This document shows, piece by piece, positions 62-23,748 of a stretch of 23,748 nucleotides of DNA; within the stretch, counting starts at the first letter, position 1, and every line of letters starts with the position of its first letter. Both the position numbers and the translations under genes were made by a program. Source of the stretch: Neoechinorhynchus agilis (taxonomy: Eukaryota; Animalia; Acanthocephala); assembly GCA_051530055.1 (NCBI GenBank), contig JBMGUZ010000041.1:1-23748 (forward strand), read 5' to 3'. The notes below the pieces were generated by a model. The model had not been told where the DNA came from, searched no databases, and saw only the letters and a list, made by a program, of their open reading frames with translations.

Positions 62-406
62 TTACGCGCCACCCCATTGGGCCGTTGTTATCACGCTTGC
101 CGTGTTGCCCCGTTGAATAGCCACACTCAAGCGTTGGATGAGGTAGTTCCTTTGTCTGTGATCTCCGCTGGCTTTTATGAGTAGTCGGCCTATCTCCGCG
201 CAAAATTTCTTTGCCGAAACTCCAAATGCCCCATTTGTCTCCACACCGAAAGGAAGGAATAGGTGAGTCTTTTCCAGCTCAGCGTATTTCGCTCTCTCCT
301 CCCCGACCGCCGTCGCAGCCCCTCCCGGTCCCGATATTGCATCACTTCGGCTGGAGGGTGCTAACGAATCGACGCATGTGGCGTCCCAGATAAGGCATTT
401 TCCTCC
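62..406 (-). mobile_element. 3' fragment of a CRE-type non-LTR retrotransposon (C-terminal part of the restriction-like endonuclease), inserted into the Gypsy integrase
   Basis: The last ~115 aa of ORF 62..1204 read GKCLIWDATCVDSLAPS...ERAKYAEL...FLPFGVETNGAFG...QRLSVAIQRGNTASV, matching the C-terminal REL region of CRE-clade elements. The switch from integrase (RSLLCTST) to CRE sequence is at ~406/407. Confidence 0.85.
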
Positions 407-1204
407 AGTAGAGGTACAAAGCAGCGATCTTAGATTTCCCAGAGCTTGTAACAACGCTTCGTCCCACTTTGTTATTGGCCAAGACTTGTCTTCCAATGTT
501 AGGAGGATCGTCTTCCAAAGGGTACCATTGAGACGTTCACATTGTCCATTGGCATGAGGACGATAGGAGGTTGTGTGACTTGAGCATATCCTTAGCGAAG
601 TTAGCCAATCGCGTAATGTTCTAGAGGTGAAGCAGGAGCCGCGATCAGAGTGGATAAAGGAGGGACATCCAAAGAGCGAGAATATTCGTTCGAGGCATAA
701 TTTGACGCTGTCAGCCGAGGTGTCCTTACAAGCGAATGCTATAGGGTAACGAGAAAACTCGTCTATTGCCACGAATAAATATTTGTATCCGTGCGTTGAC
801 GTTGGTAAGGGTCCTTTGAAGTCCACGGAGATTCTCTCCCAGGGCGCCATCGCTTTTATCAATTTCAAGCTCGATTGAGGTTTGAAAAAGCGAGGTTTCA
901 AGTGGCAGCAAATGGGACATTCTGCAGTGATCTTTCGCACGTCATTCAAATCGAACGGTAAGTTTTGCTGTCGAATGAAATGGAGTAGTCTAGTGTTTCC
1001 GGGATGGCCGAGAGACCGATGAACGTCTTTTAGTTTATTGAACGATATGTTCATTGACGCACATACATTTCTCGATAGTGCATCCGCACTCAAATTGTCT
1101 TTACCGGGTCGGAATCGGATACTATAGGAGAACATTGATAACTGTAGCTTCCACCGCAAAATCTTGTCGTTCCGGATCTTCCCGGCGTGTCGTTGATTTA
1201 GCAC
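407..1204 (-). pseudogene. Gypsy pol: end of RNase H plus integrase (HHCC zinc finger and DDE core)
   Basis: KIRNDKILRWKLQL...RPGKDNLSADALSR (RNase H end); HRSLGH...CPIC; SVDFKGP, HSDRGSCF, ANGQCERLNG. Confidence 0.93.
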
Positions 1205-2490
1205 AGCGATTAGCGGTTGGATTTTGCTGGAATAATTAGAAATCCACCGACTGTAATACGCAAAAAAATCCCAATAAACGCCTTAAGGTCGCTTTGTTCG
1301 TTGAAGTTCGGATTTCGTCCAAGGGTTTAAGCCGCGAACGATCTGGTTTCAGCTGTCCTGCGCCGATATCGTATCCTAATACTCGAATGGTTTCTTTGCA
1401 AAACGTACTCTTTGCTTCGTTCAACTTCAATTCGGCAAGCGATGTGACTTTTTTAAAACGGTTTAGATTGACATTGTGTTCTTCACGGGTTTTGTCACAT
1501 ACAATAACGTCGCCCAAATAGGCAAAGGTAGCTTTTAATTCGTTCCCATCGATTACGTGGTTCATGAATCTCTGAAAGGCGGCCACTCCATTTGTCACTC
1601 CCATGGGGATTCGCGTAAAGCGATAGAATTTTCCGCAAGCTTCGAAAGTTGTAAAATTGCGCTCTTTGATCTGTATAGGTACCTGATGGTAAGCGTCTTT
1701 TAGGTCTAAGTGGCTGAGATATCTATATTTTGTGATTTTATTTTGCAAGAGAGCTTAATTTGGGAAGCGGATAAGCGTCCAAGTACGTGATCCTATTAAT
1801 AGTCTGCGAAAAGTCAACGACAAGTCGCTTTTTCCCATTTTCGCGCTTGACGACAATAACTTGGGCTCGCCAAGGTGAGTTCGCGAGTTCTATGACTTGA
1901 TCTCGCAATAGTCGATTGATTTCTGCACGGATAAACGTTGAATTTTCTTCATTGTGCCTTCTCGACTTGGTTACGATCGGAGTCGTGTCTTCGCTCAAAT
2001 TCTCAAAGAGTAGGGGTGAATAGTGAGACTGCTTGGTATTGACCGATGCGATTCGCAGATCTAAACTTTCCATAGTTCCTCCCGGTTTTATCCGCATCTC
2101 AAAATGTAAGCCAATAAAAGGTATTCCAAGGATAACATCGGAACATAAATCGTTTAATAGAAACAATTCCACGTTCAAACAGTTTCTTTGTTCATACTGT
2201 ATGTCCACCAGGCATTTTCCCAACACTTTTCGAGACGAATTACCCGCGGCCATCAGGACGTTGAGATTAACAGGCGTGTAACGTATTCGTAGTTTTCGTG
2301 TCGCGCTCATATCGATGAAGTTTAAAACACTTCCAGTATCCACTAAAGCCGACATTTGACAATTTGAAACATTTATTGAGATTTGAACACGTTTGTCGGA
2401 CTGAGCTTCGAGATTGCTGGTCGCAAGAAAAATCGAAGATACGCTTTTATTCGTCAATTTTCCTTTAGTCTTACAAACCCTAGCAAATGG
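1205..2490 (-). pseudogene. Gypsy pol: aspartic protease and reverse transcriptase, frameshifted
   Basis: ALVDTGSVLNFI and SPWRAQVIVVKR...RLVVDFSQTIN...DAYPLP lie in ORF 1738..2535; LDLKDAYHQV...FAYLGDV lies in ORF 1236..1748. Single-base frameshifts occur near 1744 and in the A7 run at 1262-1268. Confidence 0.92.
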
Positions 2491-3311
2491 CCCTGCTGGG
2501 AGCAGCAGTAACAGACGGCCTCTTTCGCCGGGCACTGAAATCGAGGATTCCGTTTAAGTCCACAGAAATAGCACAGGTTAGTCCCGTTTCGTGACATTTT
2601 CGTTATTTTCGATGGCTGGGTATTTACGGTTGCGTCACATTCAACGGTTTCCAAAATGGAATCCGAGCTATAACCAGGATTGATGAAGCCGACAGAACCA
2701 ACCTCGGGTTTATGGTTGAAATGCGCCAAACTTTCCACCGCATTCTGCATAGATTTTGAGATCGCGATGGCTCTGTTAAGATCCCAATGCTCGTTCTCCA
2801 AAAGTCTTTGGCGGGTAGAGTCAGATCTCAGTCCAGCAATGAACGAATCACGAAGGAAATCGTCCCGAGCTTCCTCAGCGGACACATTTTTGAAATGACA
2901 ATTTTTAGCCAACGATCGGAGTGATTGAATAAATTGGTCGATATCTTCGTTGTCTGCCTGTTTTCGTATGGACAAGAAATACCTGGCCATGACTTCGTTG
3001 CTTTCTTTTAGGAATAAACGATCTAAAGTTTTCAGAGTATCATCTAGAGAGGTCTCCTCTTCGACGAATTCGTAAACGTCCGCGCTTATGTTCAGAAGTA
3101 GAGTGTCGATGGAAACACCTCCATCGATTGATTTCAGAAGGTGTTGGAAATTCCGTCTCCATAACTTGTACTTCTTCAACGCTCCCTCCTCGTGAGGCAA
3201 TACGTTGAATCGTTCAAGACGCCATGAAGGCTTCGAGACGTTGAGCTCGCTCGGTAGCGACAAATTATGGATCACCTTCTTGGAATCCATATCGGAATTG
3301 TTAGTCGTCAT
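2454..3311 (-). pseudogene. Gypsy gag (capsid-like region plus two CCHC-type zinc knuckles)
   Basis: 285-aa ORF with RDSFIAGL and CYFCGLKRNPRFQCPAKEAVCYCCSQQGH (Mag-type double knuckle, first His replaced by Asn). A 1-nt deletion near 2487 separates it from FARVCK in the protease frame. Confidence 0.88.
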
Positions 3312-3481: not shown

Positions 3482-4494
3482 TTTTTTCGCCCCATCTCTA
3501 TCCTTCCCGCGCTCTCCAAGTCTTTGAAAAATGCTTTAAAGCGAGCCTCCTCCCCAATCTCCTAGCTAAACAATTTGGATTTCGCCCTAAATATTCAGCC
3601 ACAGATGTTCTACTCTGCATTTATGACGCGCTCATCTAAAATGTTGATTAACATCACAAGCTTATCGAAGCCTGTTCCGATTTCGGACTGGATGCTTGGA
3701 AAATTCGATGGCTCTTTTCATATTTGACAAGTCGAGCACAATACATAAAATGCAACGCCGCCACCTCAAAGACCATGCTACTATCAAAAGGTGTCCCAAA
3801 AGGAGCCATCCTTTCCCCACTCCTCTTCAACATCTTTCTTAACAGACTCAAACTCCTCTCGAGCGAAACCCGTCTATTCCTGTATGCCGACGACATAACC
3901 CTAGTCACCATTGTACCGGCAAACAAGTCACTGCCTGTTACCCTGGCTGAAATCTCAAACATTTCCGATTTCTGCGACGGCATGAAGTTATCGATCAATT
4001 TCTCGAAATCGTCTGCGATGATCCCGGCTCTTAAAGGAAACCCGTCTTTCTACGCACAACCATATCTACCGAATGCGACAAAACGCGTCGCTAACCTTCG
4101 AATTTTGGGCCTCCAGTTCCAACAAGACCTAAAATGGCATTCCCACGTCTCTTTAGCCATCAGAAAAAATAATTTCAAGACCTACCTCTTAAAACGCCTT
4201 CGTCGTTTTGGGGTGATCCCATCAGATCTAGCGAAATTTTATCTAGCTTACATTTACGCAAGCTAGAAGTTTTCCATAAGAGAGCTGTCAAAATTTGCTC
4301 CGGTGATTTTCTGTCCATGAAAGACACTCCTAACAATTTTCACAAAGCAGAGCAAACGCCTGATGTCCCATCCGCCGCGACTCGTTCCCCATATTACCCA
4401 CCCTCATAGAACGCGCAAGCCATCCTCCTTCAAACCGCGCAAATCGCGAACCAACACCTTCATTCCTTTTTTCCTGCTGCTCAGTCATATTTAA
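3482..4494 (+). mobile_element. Degenerate CR1/L2-group LINE ORF2 fragment (RT and C-terminal region)
   Basis: Across frameshifts and stops: RPISILPALSK, QFGFRPKYSATDVLL, GVPKGAILSPLLFNIF, LYADDITL, LRILGLQFQQDLKWHSHV, HKRAVKI and RTNTFIPFF, the typical ORF2 end. Confidence 0.85.
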
Positions 4495-9488: not shown

Positions 9489-9758
9489 TTACGTTATGGA
9501 GCATCCATCCTGATTCCCTCCATACTGACCAGGTGAGGAGTATGTTTGGCAACCATATCGCGGATAATTGTAACCTTGATAGTATCCATAGCTTGGATAT
9601 CTCTGTCCATGGTGCTGTCCATGGTGCCCATGGTGTCCATGGTGCCCATGTTGTCCACGGTAGCCACCATAATACATTCCAGGGTATACAGCGGGTAAGG
9701 CAGAAAAGTTGCCAGAAGAGCTTCTACGCATGACTTCAACAGGATTTCTAGTTTTTCT
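9489..9758 (-). CDS. Gly/Tyr/His-rich low-complexity peptide, probably the last exon of an unidentified gene
   Basis: Frame ...NPVEVMRRSSSG...YYGGYRGQHGHHGHHGHHGQHHGQRYPSYGYYQGYNYPRYGC...GCSIT*. Acceptor-like AG dinucleotides lie at 9759-9760 and 9748-9749. AATAAA lies ~35 nt past the stop (9450-9455). Confidence 0.6.
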   Translation of the reverse strand, partial: RKTRNPVEVMRRSSSGNFSALPAVYPGMYYGGYRGQHGHHGHHGHHGQHHGQRYPSYGYYQGYNYPRYGCQTYSSPGQYGGNQDGCSIT

Positions 9759-10993: not shown

Positions 10994-12493
10994 ATGGCTG
11001 AAATAAAGCAGGAGAAGGTAAGTCTGGAGGCTGACAGAGCGAACAATCCTGATATGAATGTGCCGGTATCAATACATTCAAGTAGCCACATTGAATTGGC
11101 AGTTCGTCGTAATGTGAAGACGAACACGTCTGCATGCCATTCGAGTCGATATGTTTCATGTAATCGTGATTGATCAATTGATCTCCAAATCGATCATTCA
11201 TGGAATAAACCTGATATTCGTCAAACGGGAACTCAGACGTCCAATGGAATTGGTGGATTTATTCCGTTTCCCGTTGGTATTCCGGTCCCCATTCCAATGT
11301 GCATGTTTCGATACTTTACACCGCGTCCAATCCCTTTGCCGATTCCATTGCCGATTCCGGTCTTTCTACCTGTTGGAGAAAAAAGATTTAAAGAACTAAT
11401 CGATCGATCGGTGAAAAATGAACCAACTGAAGAGCAAAGTGAGCACTTTAGTGAAATAGAAAAAGAAGAACAATGTACAGTAGAAACTCGACGGTTACCA
11501 AACCAGTTAGAAATGCCTCCTTCGGTCGACGAATTTTTCATTTCGACCGATAAAGAGCACAACTTAACACTGGGCGCTCAGCTGTTTCAGAGTTTTGTAC
11601 AAACCTACCGCCGTAAGGATCCGTCTATTCCAAAAACATTCCCTGAGTTCAGTGTTGAACAGCTAAGTAAATCTTTGCTTAGATTCGCTATCCAACTGAA
11701 AAAATCCGACGGAACACTGTGCTCCCCAGAAGTTCTCTATTTCGTATCTGTTAGTGTTCACTATTTTCTGAGATCGATCGGAAGGGAGGAAGACATCCTG
11801 TACGATCCTGAATTCAACGCTTTTTCACAATTCGTTTTTGATCGAATCCAACATTGCACTGTTCAAATCGATCCTCGAGACAATCGAGTATATTCTCGTA
11901 TTAATGAAGAAATCTTATGGAAATCGTATATGCTTGGCGCTCATTCACCCAGAACATTACTGAATACTTTGTTTTACATTAACATCAAATGCTTTCTTAT
12001 TCTTAACATTCAGGATCACTACGACCTCACTTTCGCTAATGTCCGCCGTCATGTAAAACGATGGGTCGTACCAATCGATAGCGAGGATCAAAAATTAAAT
12101 GAAAGTGAAAGCAGTCATAATGAAAATCAGCACTATAAGGAAGTGAGCAGGCAGCGGTTCATTCGCTATTATCCAACGCGCGACCCGGATCTTATCTTTG
12201 AACAAATAGAAGACCGATCCTTTGCCATGCATTGCGCATGCCGCATTTTCGAATTCTACATCTCCAAGTGCCCAGTTTCTTTACGGCATTCCGAACATTG
12301 CATCTATTTAGAACCCGAAAAGTCCGTTATGCCAGAATCACCGATTTGGTTCACCAGCAAAGCCGTTTCAGAGATGACACTAACCAAAATGATGCTCCAA
12401 ACGAGACTAATCAAGGAAATGTCGGAACTCGAAATCGCTTTTGCTAGTCAAAGCGGAAGCAGTACAGCAGCAGGACAGACAACAGCCGCCTAA
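10994..12493 (+). CDS. ZMYM: ZMYM2/3/4-Woc family protein (Pro-rich segment and DUF3504 domain); 5' structure uncertain (in-frame TGA at 11171)
   Basis: IPFPVGIPVPIPM...PIPLPIPVFLP, LGAHSPRTLLNTLFYINIKCF...DHYDLTFANV and CRIFEFYISKCPVSLR...IYLEPEKSVMPESPIWF match the ZMYM/Woc C-terminus. Upstream ATG at 10994 (MAEIKQEK) is in the same frame. Confidence 0.85.
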
Positions 12494-12547: not shown

Positions 12548-13030
12548 ACATTTAAAGAATTGTTTTGGAAAAAAACGAAGATCAGCATCAAATTAGAGTG
12601 ACGTAAGATCAATGCGATTTGCACACTCGAAAATGTTACCATACAACATAAACATTCCATTTGACAAGGCAAAAAATATTATCACAACCATCTCACACCA
12701 AAGATACCAGCCGACAACAAAATAAGCAAAATGAGAGAAATTTTAATAATAAAAAAAGTCGTATAATTCAATTTTTGAAACTTTAGAATTCTAAAAAATG
12801 CACATAAGAAAAAATTACGTCGATAATTCCGAAGACCATCGCGAAGATCGCATTTCATCATAGTAAATTAAAGGATAAAATATCACAAAAGGGAGAATTC
12901 GCCCGAGATTTCAATCGCTAAGAATTCAATTACAAATTAAGAACCGAAATCTCGATATCATCATTCGTTCACTAGAACGAAAGTAAGATTTTTGAGAAAT
13001 TAATCATCTCATCTCAAAGAATTCTAAAGA

Positions 13031-13098
13031 ATGCTCAGAAGAAAAACTTTCGTCAGTAAATCCGAAGACCATCGCGAAGATCGCATTTCATCATAGCA
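13031..13098 (-). ncRNA. SNORD35: SNORD35/snR73-like box C/D snoRNA (representative intact copy)
   Basis: Minus strand: C box ATGATGA (13094-13088), guide TCGCGATGGTCT (13077-13066), D' CGGA (13064-13061), C' CTGACGA (13056-13050), D CTGA (13038-13035), short TGC/GCA terminal stem. The guide pairs with 28S AGACCGUCGUGA (2 G-U), and D'+5 falls on the first C (yeast Cm2959). Confidence 0.82.
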
Positions 13099-16000
13099 AA
13101 TTAAAGGATCAAATAGCAAAAAAAGAGAATTCGCTAGAGATTTCAATCGCTAAGAATTCGAGTACAAATTAACATCAGAAATCTCGATATCATCATTCGT
13201 TCAGTAGAACGAAAGTTAGATTTTTGAGAAATTCATCACCGCACCTCAAAGAATTCTAAAGAATGCTCACAAGAAAATCGTTCGTCAATAAATACGAAGA
13301 CCATCGCGAAGATCGCATTTCATCATAGCAAATTAAAGGACAAAAAAAGCACAAAAAGGAGAATTCGCACGACATTTCAATCGCCAAGAATTCAAGTACA
13401 AATTAAGATAATAAATCTCGATATTATCAATCGTTCACTAGATCGAAAGTTAGATTTTTGAGAAATTCATCATCTCATCTCAAAGAATTCTAAAGAATGC
13501 TCACAAGAAAAACTTTGGTCAATAAATCCGAAGACCATCGCGAAGATCGAATTTCATCATAAAAAATTAAAGGATAAAAAAGCACAAAAAGAAGAATTCG
13601 CACGACATTTCAATCGCCAAGAATTCAAGCACAAATTAAGATCATAAATCTCGATATCATCATTCGTTCACTAGAACGAAAGTTAGATTTTTGAGAAATT
13701 ACTCATCTCATCTCCAAGAATTCTAAAGAATGCTCAGAAGCAAAACTTTCGTCAATAAATCCGAAGACCATCGCGAAGATCGCATTTCATCACTGCAAAT
13801 TAAAGGATAAAATATCACAAAAGGGAGAATTAACCCGAGAATTTAATCGCTAAGAATTCAAGTACGAATTAACATCAGAAATCTCGATATCATCATTCGT
13901 TCAGTAGAACGAAAGTTAGATTTTTGAGAAATTCATCATCTCACCTCAAAGAATTCTAAAGAATGCTCACAAGAAAATCGTTCGTCAATAAATAAGACCA
14001 TCGCGAAGATCGCATTTAATCATACCAGATTAAAGGATAAAATAGCACAAAAGTTAGAAGTCGCCCGAAACTTCAATCGCTAACAACTCTATTAAAAATT
14101 AAGATCAGAAATCTCGATATCATCATTCGTTCAGTAGAACGAAAGTTAGATTTTTGAGAAATTCATCATATCATCTAAAGAATTCTAAAGAATGCTCAGA
14201 AGCAAAACTTTCGTCAATAAATCCGAAGACCATCGCGAAGATCGCATTTCATCATAGCAAATTGAAGGATAAAATAGCAAAAAAAGAGAATTCGCCCGAG
14301 ATTTCAACCGCTAAGAATTCCAGTACAAATTAAGATTAGAAATCTCGACATCATCATTCGTTCAGTGGAACGGAAGTTAGATTTTTGAGAAATTCATCAT
14401 CTCATGTAAAGAATTTCAAGGAATGCTCAGAAGCAAAACTTTGGTCAATAAATCCGAAGACCATCGCGAAGATCGAATTTAATCACAGCAAATTAAAGGA
14501 TAAAATATCACAAAATAGAGAATTTGCCCGAGATTTCAATCGCTAAGAATTCAAGTACAAATGAAGATCAGAAATCTCGATATCATCATTCGTTCAGTAG
14601 AACGAAAGTTAGATTTTTGAGAAATTCATCATCTCATCCCAAAGAATTCTAAAGAATGCTCACAAGAAAAACTTTCGTCAATAAATCCGAAGACCATCGC
14701 GAAGATCGCATTTCATCATAGCAAATTAAAGGATAAAATAGCACAAAAAGAAGAATTCGCCCGACATTTCAATCGCCAAGAATTCAAGTACAAATTAAGA
14801 TCAGAAATCTCGATATCATCATTCGTTCAGTAGAACGAAAGTTAGATTTTTGAGAAATTCATCATCTCATCTAAAGAATTCTAAAGAATGCTCAGAAGCA
14901 AAACTTTCGTCAATAAATCCGAAGACCATCGCGAAGATCGCATTTCATCACAGCAAATTAAAGGATAAAATATCACAAAATAGAGAATTTGCCCGAGATT
15001 TCAATCGCTAAGAATTCAAGTACAAATGAAGATCAGAAATCTCGATATCATCATACGTTCAGTAGAACGAAAGTAAGATTTTTGAGAAATTCATCATCTC
15101 ATCTCAAAGAATTCTAAAGAATGCTCACAAGAAAAACTTTCGTCAATAAATCCGAAGACCATCGCGAAGATCGCATTTCATCATAGCAAATTAAAGGATA
15201 AAAAAGCACAAAAAGGAGAATTCGCACGACATTTCAATCGCCAAGAATTCAAGTACAAATTAAGATCATAAATCTCGATATTATCAATCGTTCACTAGAT
15301 CGAAAGTTAGATTTTTGAGAAATTCATCATCTCATCCCAAAGAATTCTAAAGAATGCTCACAAGAAAAACTTTCGTCAATAAATCCGAAGACCATCGCGA
15401 AGATCGCATTTCATCATAGCATATTAAAGGATAAAAAGGCACAAAAAGGAGAATTCGCACGACATTTCAATCGCCAAGAATTCAAGTACAAATTAAGATC
15501 AGAAATCTCGATATTATCAATCGTTCACTAGAACGAAAGTTAGATTTTTGAGAAATTACTCATCTCATCTCCAAGAATTCTAAAGAATGCTCAGAAGCAA
15601 AACTTTCGTCAATAAATCCGAAGACCATCGCGAAGATCGCATTTCACCACTGCAAATTAAAGGATAAAATATCACAAAAGGGAGAATTAACCCGAGAATT
15701 TAATCGCTAACAACTCTACTAAAAATTAAGATCAGAAATCTCGATATCTTCATTCGTTCTGTAGAATGAAAGTTTGATTTTTGAGAAATTCATCATCTCA
15801 TCTAAAGAATTCTCACAAGAAAATCGTTCGTCAATTAATCCGAAGACCATCGCGAAGATCGCATTTCATCACTGCAAATTAAAGTATAAAATATCACAAA
15901 ATAGAGAATTTGCCCGAGATTTCAATCGCTAAGAATTCAAGTACAAATGAAGATCAGAAATCTCGATATAATCATTCGTTCAGTTGAACGAAAGTACGAT

Positions 16001-19000
16001 TTTTGAGAAATTCATCATCTCAAAGAATTCTAAAGAATGATCACAAGAAAAACTTTCGTCAATAAATCCGAAGACCATCGCGAAGATCGCATTTCATCAT
16101 AGCAAATTAAAGGATAAAAAAACACAAAAAGGAGAATTCGCCCGACATTTCAATCAAAAAAAATTCAAGTACAAATTAAGGTCAGAAATCTCGATATCAT
16201 CATTTGTTCAGTAGAACGAAAGTAAGATTTTTGAGAAATTACTCATCTCATCTCCAAGAATTCTAAAGAATGATCACAAGAAAAACTTTCGTCAATAAAT
16301 CCGAAGACCATCGTGAAGATCGCATTTCATCATAGCAAATTAAAGGATAAAAAAGCACAAAAAGGAGAATTCGCACGACATTTCAATCCCCAAGAATTCA
16401 AGTACAAATTAAGATCATAAATCTCGATATTATCAATCGTTCACTAGATCGAAAGTAAGATTTTTGAGAAATTCATCATCTCATCCCAAAGAATTCGAAA
16501 GAATGCTCACAAGAAAAACTTTCGTCAATAAATCCGAAGACCATCGCGAAGATCGCATTTCATCATAGCACATTAAAGGATAAAAAAACACAAAAAGGAG
16601 AATTCGCCCGACATTTCAATCGCACAGAATTCAAATACAAATTAAGATCAGAAATCTCGATATCATCATTCGTTCAGTAGAACGAAAGTAAGATTTTTGA
16701 GAAATTAATCATCTCATCTCAAAGAATTCAAAAGAATGCTAACGAGAAAAACTTTCGTCAATAAATCCGAAGACCATCGCGAAGATCGCATTTAATCACT
16801 GCAAGTTAAAGGATAAAATATCACAAAAGGGAGAATTAACCCGAGATTTTAATCGCTAAGAATTCAAGTACGAATTAACATCAGAAATTTCGACATCATC
16901 ATTCGTTCAGTAGAACGAAAGTTAGATTTTTGAGAAATTCATCATCTCATCTCAAAGAATTCTAAAGAATGCTCATAAGAAAAACTTTCGTCAAAAAACC
17001 CGAAGACCATCGTGAAGATGGCATTTCATCCTAGCAAATTAAAGGATAAAAAAGAACAAAAAAGAGAATTCGCCCGACATTTCAATCGCCAAGAATTCAA
17101 GTACAAATTAAGATGAGAAATCTCGATATCATCATTCGTTCAGTAGAACGGAAGTTAGATTTTTGAGAAATTCATCATCTCATGTAAAGAATTCTAAAGA
17201 ATGCTCAGAAGAAAAACTTTGGTCAATAAATCCGAAGACCATCGCGAAGATCGCATTTCATCATAGCAAATTAAAGGATAAAATAGCAAAAAAAGAGAAT
17301 TCGCTAGAGATTTCAATCGCTAAGAATTCCAGTACAAATTACCATCATAAATCTCGATATCATCATACGTTCAGTAGAACGAAAGTAAGATTTTTGAGAA
17401 ATTCATCATCTCATCTAAAGAATTCTAAAGAATGCTCAGAAGCAAAACTTTCGTCAGTAAATCCGAAGACCATCGCGAAGATCGCATTTCATCATAGCAA
17501 ATTAAAGGATAAAATAGCAAAAAAAGAGAATTCGCTAGAGATTTCAATCGCTAAGAATTCCAGTACAAATTACCATCATAAATCTCGATATCATCATTCG
17601 TTCAGTAGAACGAAAGTTAGATTTTTGAGAAATTCATCATCTCACCTCAAAGAATTCTAAAGAATGCTCACAAGAAAATCGTTCGTCAATAAATAAGAAG
17701 ACCATCGCGAAGATCGCATTTAATCATACCAGATTAAAGGATAAAATAGCACAAAAGTTAGAAGTCGCCCGAAACTTCAATCGCTAACAACTTCATTAAA
17801 AATTAAGATCAGAAATCTCGATATCATCATTCGTTCAGCAGAACGAAAGTTAGATTTTTGAGAAATTCATCATATCATCTAAAGAATTCTAAAGAATGCT
17901 CAGAAGCAAAACTTTCGTCAATAAATCCGAAGACCATCGCGAAGATCGCATTTCATCATAGCAAATTGAAGGATAAAATAGCAAAAAAAGAGAATTCGCC
18001 CGAGATTTCAACCGCTAAGAATTCCAGTACAAATTAAGATTAGAAATCTCGACATCATCATTCGTTCAGTGGAACGGAAGTTAGATTTTTGAGAAATTCA
18101 TCATCTCATGTAAAGAATTTCAAGGAATGCTCAGAAGCAAAACTTTGGTCAATAAATCCGAAGACCATCGCGAAGATCGAATTTAATCACAGCAAATTAA
18201 AAGAAAAATATCACAAAATAGAGAATTTGCCCGAGATTTCAATCGCTAAGAATTCAAGTACAAATGAAGATCAGAAATCTCGATATAATCATACGTTCAG
18301 TAGAACGAAAGTAAGATTTTTAAGAAATTCATCATCTCATCTCAAAGAATTCTAAAGAATGCTCACAAGAAAAACTTTCGTCAATAAATCCGAAGACCAT
18401 CGCGAAGATCGCATTCCATCATAGCAAATTAAAGGATAAAATAGCAAAAAAAGAGAATTCGCTAGAGATTTCAATCGCTAAGAATTCGAGTACAAATTAA
18501 CATCAGAAATCTCGATATCATCATTCGTTCAGTAGAACGAAAGTTAAATTTTTGAGAAATTAATCATCGCACCTCAAAGAATTCTAAAGAATGCTCACAA
18601 GAAAATCGTTCGTCAATAAATAAGAAGACCATCGCGAAGATCGCATTTAATCATACCAGATTAAAGGATAAAATAGCACAAAAGTTAGAATTCGCCCGAC
18701 ATTTCAATCACAAAAAATTCAAGTACAAATTAAGGTCAGAAATCTCGATATCATCATTTGTTCAGTACAACGAAAGTAAGATTTTTTAGAAATTAATCAT
18801 CTCATCTCAAAGAATTCTAAAGAATGCTAACAAGAAAAACTTTCGTCAATAAATCCGAAGACCATCGCGAAGATCGCATTTCATCATAGCAAATTAAAGG
18901 ATAAAAAAACACAAAAAGAAGAATTCGCACGACATTTCAATCGCCAAGAATTCAAGTACAAATTAAGATCATAAATCTCGATATCATCAATCGTTCACTA

Positions 19001-21519
19001 GAACGAAAGTTAGATTTTTGAGAAATTACTCATCTCATCTCCAAGAATTCTAAAGAATGCTCAGAAGCAAAACTTTCGTCAATAAATCCGAAGACCATCG
19101 CGAAGATCGCATTTCATCACGGCAAATTAAAGGATAAAATATCACAAAAGGGAGAATTAACCCGAGAATTTAATCGCTAAGAATTCAAGTACGAATTAAC
19201 ATCAGAAATCTCGATATCATCATTCGTTCAGTAGAACGAAAGTTAGATTTTTGAGAAATTCATCATCGCACCTCAAAGAATTCTAAAGAATGCTCACAAG
19301 AAAATCGTTCGTCAATAAATACGAAGACCATCGCGAAGATCGCATTTAATCACACCAGATTAAAGGATAAAATAGCACGAAAGTTAGAAGTCGCCCGAAA
19401 CTTCAATCGCTAACAACTCTATTAAAAATTAAGATCAGAAATCTCGATATCATCATTCGTTCAGTAGAACGAAAGTTAGATTTTTGAGAAATTCATCATC
19501 GCACCTCAAAGAATTCTAAAGAATGCTCACAAGAAAATCGTTCGTCAATAAATACGAAGACCATCGCGAAGATCGCATTTAATCATACCAGATTAAAGGA
19601 TAAAATAGCACAAAAGGTAGAAGTCGCCCGAAACTTCAATCGCTAACAACTCTATTAAAAATTAAGATCAGAAATCTCGATATCATCATTCGTTCAGTAG
19701 AACGAAAGTTAGATCTTTGAGAAATTCATCATATCATCTAAAGAATTCTAAAGAATGCTCAGAAGCAAAACTTTCGTCAATAAATCCGAAGACCATCGCG
19801 AAGATCGCATTTCATCATAGCAAATTGAAGGATAAAATAGCAAAAAAAGAGAATTCGCCCGAGATTTCAACCGCTAAGAATTCCAGTACAAATTAAGATT
19901 AGAAATCTCGACATCATCATTCGTTCAGTGGAACGGAAGTTAGATTTTTGAGAAATTCATCATCTCATGTAAAGAATTTCAAGGAATGTACAGAAGCAAA
20001 ACTTTGGCCAATAAATCCGAAGACCATCGCGAAGATCGAATTTAATCACAGCAAATTAAAGGATAAAATATCACAAAATAGAGAATTTGCCCGAGATTGC
20101 AATCGCTAAGAATTCAAGTACAAATGAAGATCAGAAATCTCGATATAATCATACGTTCAGTAGAACGAAAGTAAGATTTTTAAGAAATTCATCATCTCAT
20201 CTCAAAGAATTCTAAAGAATGCTCACAAGAAAAACTTTCGTCGATAAATCCGAAGACCATCGCGAAGATCGCATTCCATCATAGCAAATTAAAGGATAAA
20301 AAAGAACAAAAAAGAGAATTCGCACGACATTTCAATCGCCAAGAATTCAAGTACAAATTAAGATCATAAATCTCGATATTATCAATCGTTCACTAGATCG
20401 AAAGTTAGATTTTTGAGAAATTCATCATCTCATCCCAAACAATTCTAAAGAATGCTCACAAGAAAAACTTTCGTCGATAAATCCGAAGACCATCGCGAAG
20501 ATCGCATTTCATCATAGCATATTAAAGGATAAAAAGGCACAAAAAGGAGAATTCGCACGACATTTCAATCGCCAAGAATTCAAGTACAAATTAAGATCAG
20601 AAATCTCGATATTATCAATCGTTCACTAGAACGAAAGTTAGATTTTTGAGAAATTACTCATCTCATCTCCAAGAATTCTAAAGAATGCTCAGAAGCAAAA
20701 CTTTCGTCAATAAATCCGAAGACCATCGCGAAGATCGCATTTCACCACTGCAAATTAAAGGATAAAATATCACAAAAGGGAGAATTAACCCGAGAATTTA
20801 ATCGCTAACAACTCTACTAAAAATTAAGATCAGAAATCTCGATATCTTCATTCGTTCTGTAGAATGAAAGTTTGATTTTTGAGAAATTCATCATCTCATC
20901 TAAAGAATTCAAAGAATGCTCACAAGAAAAACTTTCGTCAATAAATCCGAAGACCATCGCGAAGATCGCATTTCATCACTGCAAATTAAAGGATAAAATA
21001 TCACAAAATAGAGAATTCGCCCGAGATTTCAATCGCTAAGAATTCAAGTACAAATTAAGATCAGAAATCTCGATATCATCATTCGTTCAGTAGAACGAAA
21101 GTAAGATTTTTGAGAAATTATCATCTCATCTCAAAGAATTCTAAAGAATGCTCACAAGAAAAACTTTCGTCAATAAATCCGAAGACCATCGCGAAGATCG
21201 CATTTCATCATAGCAAATTAAAGGATAAAATAGCACAAAAAAGAGAATTCGCCCGAGATTTCAATCGCTAAGAATTCAAGTACAAATTAAGATCAGAAAT
21301 CTCGATATCATCATTCGTTCAGTAGAACGAAAGTAAGATTTTTGAGAAATTAATCATCTCATCTCAAAGAATTCTAAAGAATGCTCACAAGAAAAACTTT
21401 CGTCAATAAATCCGAAGACCATCGCGAAGATCGCATTTCATCATAGCAAATTAAAGGATAAAAAAGCACAAAAAGGAGAATTCGCCCGACATTTCAATCG
21501 CCAAGAATTCAAGTACAAA

Positions 21520-21600
21520 TTAAGATCAGAAATCTCGATATCATCATTCGTTCAGTAGAACGAAAGTTAGATTTTTGAGAAATTCATCATCTCATCTCAA
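21520..21600 (-). ncRNA. SNORD59: SNORD59/snR54-like box C/D snoRNA (representative intact copy)
   Basis: Minus strand: C box ATGATGA (21590-21584), guide CTAACTTTCGTTCT (21570-21557), D' CTGA (21555-21552), C' ATGATGA (21547-21541), D CTGA (21529-21526), TTGAGA/TCTTAA terminal stem, 81 nt. The guide is the exact complement of 18S AGAACGAAAGUUAG, and D'+5 falls on the A of yeast Am974. Confidence 0.88.
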
Positions 21601-23748
21601 AGAATTCTAAAGAATGCTCACAAGAAAAACTTTCGTCAATAAATCCGAAGACCATCGCGAAGATCGCATTTCATCATAGCAAATTAAAGGATAAAAAAGC
21701 ACAAAAAGGAGAATTCGCACGACATTTCAATCGCCAAGAATTCAAGTACAAATTAAGATCAGAAATCTCGATATCATCATTCGTTCAGTAGAACGAAAGT
21801 TAGATTTTTGAGAAATTAATCATCTCATCTCAAAGAATTCTAAAGAATGCTCACAAGAAAAACTTCGTCAATAAATCCGAAGACCATCGCGAAGATCGCA
21901 TTTCATCATAGCAAATTAAAGGATAAAATAGCAAAAAAAGAGAATTCGCCAGAGATTTCAATCGCTAAGAATTCCAGTACAAATTAAGATCATAAATCTC
22001 GATATCATCATTCGTTCAGTAGAACGAAAGTTAGATTTTTGAGAAATTCATCATCTCATCTCAAAGAATTCTAAAGAATGCTAACAAGAAAAACTTTCGT
22101 CAATAAATCCGAAGACCATCGCGAAGATAGCATTTCATCATAGCAAATTAAAGGATAAAAAAGCACAAAAAAGAGAATTCGCACGACATTTCAATCGCCA
22201 AGAATTCAAGTACAAATTAAGATCATAAATCTCGATATCATCATTCGTTCAGTAGAACGAAAGTTAGATTTTTGAGAAATTCATCATCTCATCTAAAGAA
22301 TTCTAAAGAATGCTCAGAAGAAAAACTTTCGTCAATAAATCCGAAGACCATCGCGAAGATCGCATTTCATCATAGCAAATTAAAGGATAAAATAGCAAAA
22401 AAAGAGAATTCGCTAGAGATTTCAATCGCTAAGAATTCCAGTACAAATTACCATCATAAATCTCGATATCATCATACGTTCAGTAGAACGAAAGTAAGAT
22501 TTTTGAGAAATTCATCATCTCATCTCAAAGAATTCTAAAGAATGCTCACAAGAAAAACTTTCGTCAATAAATCCGAAGACCATCGCGAAGATCGCATTTC
22601 ATCATAGCAAATTAAAGGATAAAAAAGCAAAAAAGAGAATTCGCTAGAGATTTCAATCGCTAAGAATTCCAGTACAAATTACCATCATAAATCTCGATAT
22701 CATCATACGTTCAGTAGAACGAAAGTAAGATTTTTGAGAAATTCATCATCTCATCTCAAAGAATTCTAAAGAATGCTCACAAGAAAATCGTTCGTCAATA
22801 AACACGAAGACCATCGCGAAGATCGCATTTCATCATAGCAAATTAAAGGATAAAAAAGCACAAAAAGGAGAATTCGCACGACATTTCAATCGCCAAGAAT
22901 TCAAGTACAAATTAAGATAATAAATCTCGATATTATCAATCGTTCACTAGATCGAAAGTTAGATTTTTGAGAAATTCATCATCTCATCTCAAAGAATTCT
23001 AAAGAATGCTACCAAGAAAAACTTTCGTCAATAAATCCGAAGACCATCGCGAAGATAGCATTTCATCATAGAAAATTAAAGGATAAAAAAGCACAAAAAG
23101 AAGAATTCGCACGACATTTCAATCGCCAAGAATTCAAGAACAAATTAAGATCATGAATCTCGATATCATCATTCGTTCACTAGAACAAAAGTTAGATTTT
23201 TGAGAAATTACTCATCTCATCTCCAAGAATTCAAAAGAATGCTCAGAAGCAAAACTTTCGTCAATAAATCCGAATACCATCGCGAAGATCGCATTTCATC
23301 ACTGCAAATTAAAGGATAAAATATCACAAAAGGGAGAATTAACCCGAGATTTTAATCGCTAAGAATTCAAGTACGAATTAACATCAGAAATCTCGATATC
23401 ATCATTCGTTCAGTAGAACGAAAGTTAGATTTTTGAGAAATTCATCATCGCACCTCAAAGAATTCTAAAGAATGCTCACAAGAAAATCGTTCGTCAATAA
23501 ATAAGACCATCGCGAAGATCGCATTTAATCATACCAGATTAAAGGATAAAATAGCACAAAAGGCAGAAGTCGCCCGAAATTTCAATCGCTAACAACTCTA
23601 TTAAAAATTAAGATAAGAAATTTCGACATCATCATTCGTTCAGTAGAACGAAAGTTAGATTTTTGAGAAATTCATCATCTCATCTCAAAGAATTCTAAAG
23701 AATGCTCATAAGAAAAACTTTCGTCAAAAATCCGAAGACCATCGCGAA

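Follow-up and report, generated by a model that had tools for sequence, protein, structure and literature searches.

Does the minus-strand cassette near the end of this Neoechinorhynchus agilis contig represent a working guide for the methylation of 18S rRNA, and what kind of gene is it part of? Within the window (i.e. the whole 23,748-nt stretch of DNA that was analysed) the string that had been quoted for the cassette was verified at 21526-21590, with box C, guide, box D', a 4-nt linker, box C', an 11-nt element and box D succeeding each other on the minus strand, 13 nt lying between box C and the 14-mer CTAACTTTCGTTCT of the guide and 11 nt between boxes C' and D (Table 1). The terminal C and D boxes with their stem, together with the internal D' and C' boxes and the upstream guide elements, place this copy (hereafter snoRNA-1) in the box C/D class. 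A strict layout pattern (ATGATGA, 10-16 nt, the 14-mer CTAACTTTCGTTCT, 1 nt, CTGA, 4 nt, ATGATGA, 8-14 nt, CTGA) was found to match 11 times in the window, 21526-21590 included, as compared to 0.00 matches expected from 100 shuffles, and the 14-mer by itself occurred 21 times (0.00 expected), in every case on the minus strand.

Table 1. Positions of the tandem array, its units and the elements of the two snoRNAs within the window.
Feature	Position	Strand	Remarks
Tandem array	12785..23748	minus	233-bp unit x 47.3, about 90% alike; Tandem Repeats Finder
Last array unit	12680-12912	minus	degenerate
Repeat unit containing snoRNA-1	21496..21728	minus	233 bp
snoRNA-2, second box C/D snoRNA of the unit	21615..21681	minus	
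snoRNA-2 box C	21677-21671	minus	
snoRNA-2 D' guide	21661-21649	minus	U35/snR73-type
snoRNA-2 box D'	21647-21644	minus	CGGA
snoRNA-2 D guide	21632-21622	minus	U38/snR61-type; mismatched T allele
snoRNA-2 box D	21621-21618	minus	GTGA, degenerate
snoRNA-1, complete snR54/U59-type box C/D snoRNA gene copy including terminal stem	21517..21600	minus	
snoRNA-1 terminal stem, 7 bp	21600-21594 with 21523-21517	minus	UUGAGAU with AUCUUAA; minimum-energy fold
snoRNA-1 box C	21584..21590	minus	ATGATGA
snoRNA-1 D' guide, 15 nt	21557..21571	minus	TCTAACTTTCGTTCT; 15 bp with 18S AGAACGAAAGUUAG(A)
snoRNA-1 box D'	21552..21555	minus	CTGA
snoRNA-1 D'-C' linker, 4 nt	21551-21548	minus	ACGA
snoRNA-1 box C'	21541..21547	minus	ATGATGA, perfect
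snoRNA-1 D-box guide element, 11 nt	21530..21540	minus	TATCGAGATTT
snoRNA-1 box D	21526..21529	minus	CTGA

The assignment to the SNORD59/snR54 type was borne out by the box order, the spacing, the position of the guide (a 1-nt spacer before box D') and the predicted target, all of which correspond to clan CL00065. In E-value mode, RF00473 (snR54) was the top Rfam family at every unit of the array; snoRNA-1 reached 39.7 bits (E=0.0039), the best-scoring copy of the array (23607-23687) 45.2 bits (E=0.00036), and the five best copies, snoRNA-1 being one of them, covered E-values from 0.00036 to 0.0039. The alignment is carried by the boxes and by 18 consecutive nucleotides around the guide and box D' (UAACUUUCGUUCUACUGA) that are identical to the RF00473 consensus, and the same guide was also aligned by the plant model snoR23. 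The gathering mode of Rfam returned zero matches over the whole window, the snR54 matches appearing only in E-value mode, so that the expected covariance-model significance held as an E-value and failed at the curated threshold (a gathering score of 50 bits, missed by snoRNA-1 and by the best copy alike). Being below the gathering score and yet significant by E-value, with snR54 as its top family, snoRNA-1 is to be regarded as a functional equivalent and probable orthologue rather than as a formal Rfam member, and we consider that it belongs to the snR54/U59 family by function and very probably also by descent. The highest-scoring copy (23607-23687, minus strand) has a degenerate D box (CTTA instead of CTGA), from which it follows that the score of the snR54 model does not track box integrity.

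The 14-nt perfect complement of 18S rRNA that had been predicted for the guide was confirmed, and the T that precedes it extends the match to 15 nt (18S AGAACGAAAGTTAG(A/G)) in four eukaryotic rDNA units. Since the window contains no rRNA, these units (L001, L009, L023 and L024, each with complete 18S, 5.8S and 28S according to Rfam) were retrieved by searching metagenome contigs for the 15-mer AAGAACGAAAGTTAG; they are not the rRNA of N. agilis itself, and as the target string served to retrieve them, they locate it within 18S but say nothing about how common it is. When set against the metazoan-looking 18S of L024, the guide (TCTAACTTTCGTTCT) forms Watson-Crick pairs at 15 out of 15 positions, and the duplex (-21.9 kcal/mol) is separated by a margin of 7.7 kcal/mol from the runner-up across the whole rDNA (-14.2 kcal/mol). 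The 18S segment on which the reading of the target depends is AGAACGAAAGU. As the pairing begins at the second nucleotide upstream of box D', the fifth nucleotide is set opposite the second A of GAACG, which is nucleotide 979 in the 18S of L001. In vertebrate 18S, AGAACGAAA is followed by GUCGG; even so, 11 bp are left for the guide. Inspection by eye of the flanks of the 18S target brought up no useful complementarity to the 11-nt D element or to the 13 nt that precede the guide. Yeast Am974 is guided by snR54 (PMC5199042), and this guide forms one clan (CL00065) with those of human Am1031 (U59) and Arabidopsis Am975 (AtsnoR59); the snR54/U59 family can be followed back as far as the last eukaryotic common ancestor (PMC3511168). 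Taken together, these observations support the prediction that snoRNA-1 targets the second A of GAACG in 18S, i.e. the equivalent of yeast Am974 and human Am1031.

Within the same region of snoRNA-1, the 3' half of the guide (UUCGUUC) is perfectly complementary to GAACGAA (the end of box D', the linker and the first A of box C'; 21548-21563, minus strand). In the fold, the two form a hairpin (7 bp, with a loop of 4 nt) in which the 18S target is mimicked and which would compete with target pairing. As a functional feature this hairpin was rejected, since it shows no compensatory change and the two substitutions found in variant copies hit different pairs.

The unit that contains snoRNA-1 harbors a further box C/D snoRNA (snoRNA-2), whose guides also point to rRNA. 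Its D' guide (TTCGCGATGGTCT, followed by CGGA) pairs with 28S AGACCGUCGUGAG over 13 bp, three of which are G-U (-20.9 kcal/mol, the best site in the rDNA), the predicted methylation site being the C of AGAC*CG, i.e. Cm2959 of snR73/U35 (yeast numbering here and below; PMC5199042). Another placement of its box D' (TTGA/CTGA) was dropped, because CGGA puts the U35-type guide in register and because the targets of the alternative are not conserved between the rDNAs. The D guide of snoRNA-2 occurs in several alleles (compared e.g. between 21622-21632 and 19770-19780). The G allele (AGTTTTGCTT), which is letter-identical to the D guide of the Rfam consensus for Dictyostelium DdR13 and mostly linked to a canonical CTGA box D, has its best site at 28S AAGCAGAACU (-13.2 kcal/mol; Am1133 of snR61/U38). 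The majority T allele (AGTTTTTCTT) is mismatched beside the target nucleotide, gives rise to a T5 run and mostly goes together with GTGA, and a third allele (CGAACGATTTTCTT) is found in 9 units. As the unit under study combines the mismatched T allele with the degenerate box D, its snoRNA-2 is probably a pseudogene. The three guides of the unit (U59, U35 and U38 types) share the property of fitting classic rRNA sites above any other site in the rDNA.

For the 11-nt element before box D of snoRNA-1 (TATCGAGATTT) the original prediction could name no target; the search of rRNA modifies this statement in that it yields a weak 28S candidate (AGAUCUUGGUG), the assignment being insecure. This candidate is the sole site in all four rDNAs that pairs all 11 nucleotides of the element (7 Watson-Crick and 4 G-U pairs, -10.1 kcal/mol). 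It ranks best in L001. In L024 it comes third, after two 28S partners (-12.2 and -11.3 kcal/mol) that were discounted as lineage-specific, since the other rDNAs lack them. In the weak, full-length duplex with 28S GAUCUUGGUGG, position 5 of the element faces the C of AGAUC*UU, which in L001 sits 304 nt past the A of the U38 site; since the same spacing separates A1133 from C1437 in yeast (PMC5199042), we equate this C with the U24 site (Cm1437). Of shuffled 11-nt guides, 63% had a site of the same quality at some place in the rDNA, while a random match would fall on a known methylated nucleotide in about 1-2% of cases (our own estimate, from a likewise estimated ~55 sites in ~5.5 kb). The remaining guides of the unit were also seen, on inspection, to use G-U pairs in places that C or A would have to occupy for Watson-Crick pairing, and an AT-biased drift under a pairing constraint would yield such a pattern. 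On this footing we propose the U24/Cm1437 site as a tentative target of the 11-nt element, the odds being against it.

The treatment of the cassette as a single gene did not hold: snoRNA-1 belongs to a tandem series of at least 47 copies, some three quarters of them defective. The array reaches the last base of the contig, where it breaks the assembly, and its copy number is at least 47. Its units are dicistronic and arranged head to tail, all on the minus strand, in the order ~50-nt spacer, snoRNA-2, 25-nt spacer, snoRNA-1 and ~30-nt spacer; snoRNA-1 is the second cistron, and neither intronic nor solitary. With several genes on one strand, short spacers and a unit repeated head to tail, the locus has the features of a tandem snoRNA cluster. 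Among the 46 full units, box C is retained in 33 copies of snoRNA-1, a perfect guide in 20, box D' in 33 and box D in 27, and all four together in 12 (the copy under study included), as compared to an expectation of 6.0 under independent loss (P about 0.001, a significance inflated by the relatedness of the copies). Furthermore, 8 of the 11 copies that match the strict pattern have an identical 65-nt core. The mean pairwise identity of units is slightly raised at lags of 8 and 22-23 units, and characteristic variants with multiple defects recur 8 and 22 units apart, which indicates that the array grew by block duplication and is not a regular higher-order repeat. On the plus strand of the array there are three ORFs of at least 60 aa, sporadic and non-periodic. 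No tRNA genes were found.

In order to express constraint along the unit we counted changes per column by parsimony on a tree of the units, a measure that gene conversion may distort; it replaced a conservation test on cell counts, which was rejected as it overstated significance for related copies. Spacers showed 1.57 changes per column and boxes and stems 1.64 (i.e. no constraint visible relative to spacers), while the three rRNA guides showed 0.80 (P=0.025 against spacers) and the pre-guide together with the 11-nt D element of snoRNA-1 0.30 (P=0.001 against spacers). As the boxes and terminal stems vary like the spacers, the copies give no evident sign of being individually under purifying selection. 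Such figures invite the reading that the array is dead, i.e. that a dicistron was amplified into silent heterochromatin, that the copy under study is intact through its youth or through recent homogenisation, and that the working U59 resides elsewhere (e.g. in an undetected solitary gene). Canonical copies amount to only 12 of 46 in line with it, and yet this is twice the number that independent decay would leave, eight copies sharing an identical 65-nt core; likewise, boxes and stems are as variable as spacers, yet the guides are better conserved than the spacers. Its other props are the position of the array at the end of a short (23.7-kb) contig and a neighborhood rich in transposon remains, against which stands that no alternative U59 locus is known. 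Adding the RNA evidence considered next, we regard a dead satellite as unlikely, and still as the most serious of the competing explanations.

This RNA evidence, which is weak, consists of unstranded Logan contigs from four RNA-labelled N. agilis runs, which contain 33-38% of the sampled words from a two-unit stretch. Small-RNA sequencing data are stated to be available for N. agilis (PMC12256650). Over 21470-21750, snoRNAs and spacers are covered alike (word depth 2-9), the contigs are colinear across unit borders (where they go back 232/233), and no recurrent splice-like joints were observed. Canonical and defective variants co-occur in roughly genomic proportion, examples (in minus-strand letters) being C>A in box D (21529), C>G in box D' (21555) and A>T in the guide (21568). 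The presence of array sequence in four RNA-labelled runs argues against a silent array, whereas defective variants at roughly the genomic proportion are what DNA carry-over predicts. The contigs would fit unspliced polycistronic precursors and, equally, carried-over DNA, and because they suit both we infer, rather than observe, the expression of the array.

The same contigs bear on a further explanation, according to which the array would mainly yield long non-coding or repeat-derived RNA (sno-lncRNA-like, or small RNAs for the silencing of repeats), with the snoRNA motifs acting only as stabilising ends, as proposed for mammalian SNORD115/116. We consider this very improbable, seeing that three guides of the unit have their best matches at classic rRNA sites, unlike the orphan snoRNAs of mammalian arrays, and that direct evidence for such RNA species is absent; what speaks for it are the colinear multi-unit contigs in RNA-labelled libraries, and the fact that the most conserved parts (the pre-guide and D-guide segments) are those without a secure rRNA target. 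The published mRNA-Seq of N. agilis was poly-A captured and directional (PMC12690905), and if the runs are identical with it, the poly-A capture would also favor a long RNA, products of this kind having been described at mammalian arrays (PMC11028025). Finally, a chance resemblance in AT-rich repetitive DNA, to which the Rfam score under the gathering threshold could be taken to point, is effectively refuted by the 0.00 matches expected for the full pattern, by a 15-nt perfect complement that is the best in the rDNA by 7.7 kcal/mol and by the two further classic guides in the adjoining snoRNA-2.

We argue that the best explanation for the locus, and a probable one, is a functional U59-type guide gene in a part-decayed tandem array. 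Under this explanation, transcription of the minus strand would produce unspliced multi-unit precursors, starting either from a single promoter upstream of the array (past the end of the contig) or within each unit, downstream of the T5 run and of the TATA-like sequence TATTTTAT that is located ~20-25 nt before snoRNA-2. Snu13, Nop58, Nop56 and fibrillarin would assemble on those copies in which the C/D and C'/D' motifs are intact, the 4-nt D'-C' linker implying a compact K-loop of the kind known from archaeal and protist guides. Exonucleases would then trim the precursor to the terminal stem, unprotected defective copies being degraded, and the mature RNA (~80 nt) would pair with pre-18S, allowing fibrillarin to 2'-O-methylate the A974 equivalent. 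The methylation of the second A of GAACG is proposed on the grounds that both the mechanism of C/D snoRNPs and the fifth-nucleotide rule are established. In such a scheme the array may combine the function of a multi-copy gene cluster with the decay of a satellite. A more far-reaching proposal, which we put forward as a possibility with less than even prospects, is that N. agilis moved much of its repertoire of rRNA-methylation guides from introns into tandem arrays that are transcribed as unspliced polycistronic units, each with four working guides; these would comprise the guides for the U59, U35 and U38 sites and a wobble-rich U24-type guide, with C->U drift having occurred where G-U pairing holds.

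The remainder of the contig harbors several other repeated or mobile elements. The remains of an LTR-type retroelement extend over 62-3311 (minus strand; ORFs resembling protease/RT and gag besides an integrase core with a zinc-binding domain, split between several frames), and a separate reverse-transcriptase fragment with a Pfam RVT_1 match is found at 3724-4266 (plus strand). An inverted repeat (5742-6013/8186-8444), with arms of ~270 nt that are 91-92% complementary and enclose ~2.2 kb, resembles the ends of a foldback element or DNA transposon. At 9489-9731 (minus strand) there is a short putative ORF rich in His, Gly and Tyr, with a run of the HGHHGHHGHHGQ type and a 9/18-bp tandem repeat at 9603-9661 (CCATGGTG(C)). 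The ORF at 11297-12493 (plus strand), which converges on the end of the array, encodes 398 aa with DUF3504 and QRICH1 domains (ZMYM-like, a kind that frequently derives from transposons). Its identity to N. agilis ACOME3_010666 is 96%, a paralogue at 55% exists in the N. agilis genome, and the ORF is almost complete in the RNA runs X2-X5.

With an ancestry of the family that reaches back to the last eukaryotic common ancestor (PMC3511168), one more animal U59-type RNA would be routine annotation. What makes the locus worthwhile is its context, i.e. a canonical rRNA guide that lies, in an animal, within a satellite-like series of 47 or more repeats. Genes of this sort would be hidden by repeat-masking pipelines under the label 'satellite', and the coexistence of intact and decayed copies offers a natural system for the upkeep of a multi-copy RNA gene under weak per-copy selection. 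In the literature that was searched we found no canonical rRNA-guide array in an invertebrate animal and nothing relevant on snoRNAs or snoRNA-derived satellites of Syndermata, and those genome papers on N. agilis that were consulted make no mention of snoRNAs or satellites.

In comparison to known systems, snoRNA-1 resembles snR54 of Saccharomyces (RF00473), human SNORD59/U59 (RF00273) and plant snoR59/snoR23 in being a box C/D RNA with a guide just before box D' that is directed at the same 18S adenosine. The snR54/U59 genes of yeast and human are solitary and intronic. From snR54 and SNORD59 it differs by its sub-gathering score, its 4-nt D'-C' linker, its perfect box C', a possible wobble-rich U24-type guide and its place in a dicistronic unit of which 47 or more copies follow one another. 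With the mammalian SNORD113/114 and SNORD115/116 and with rat Bsr, the locus shares the organisation into a large head-to-tail box C/D array within an animal genome. The snoRNAs of the mammalian arrays are orphans without known rRNA targets, each located in an intron of a repeated non-coding host gene. Unlike them, the array of N. agilis has a unit of 233 bp, gives no sign of splicing and contains canonical rRNA guides. The mammalian arrays show subfamilies, block duplications and gene conversion, and a review that describes the large snoRNA tandem repeats of animals as eutherian innovations at imprinted loci adds that understudied genomes might hold others (PMC11028025). Tandemly repeated snoRNA clusters are known from trypanosomatids and Euglena (Liang et al. 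2004 and Uliel et al. 2004, as cited in PMC2784804), and polycistronic snoRNA clusters from plants (Leader et al. 1997, as cited in PMC11028025). With all of these the N. agilis unit has in common that housekeeping rRNA-guide snoRNAs lie tens of nucleotides apart and that a polycistronic precursor is presumed, and with those of trypanosomatids and Euglena also the tandem repetition of the whole cluster; it is set apart by its animal host, by the high copy number per array and by the visible defects of most copies. Elsewhere, a polycistronic tandem layout of this kind is typical of Euglenozoa; in an animal it is unusual.
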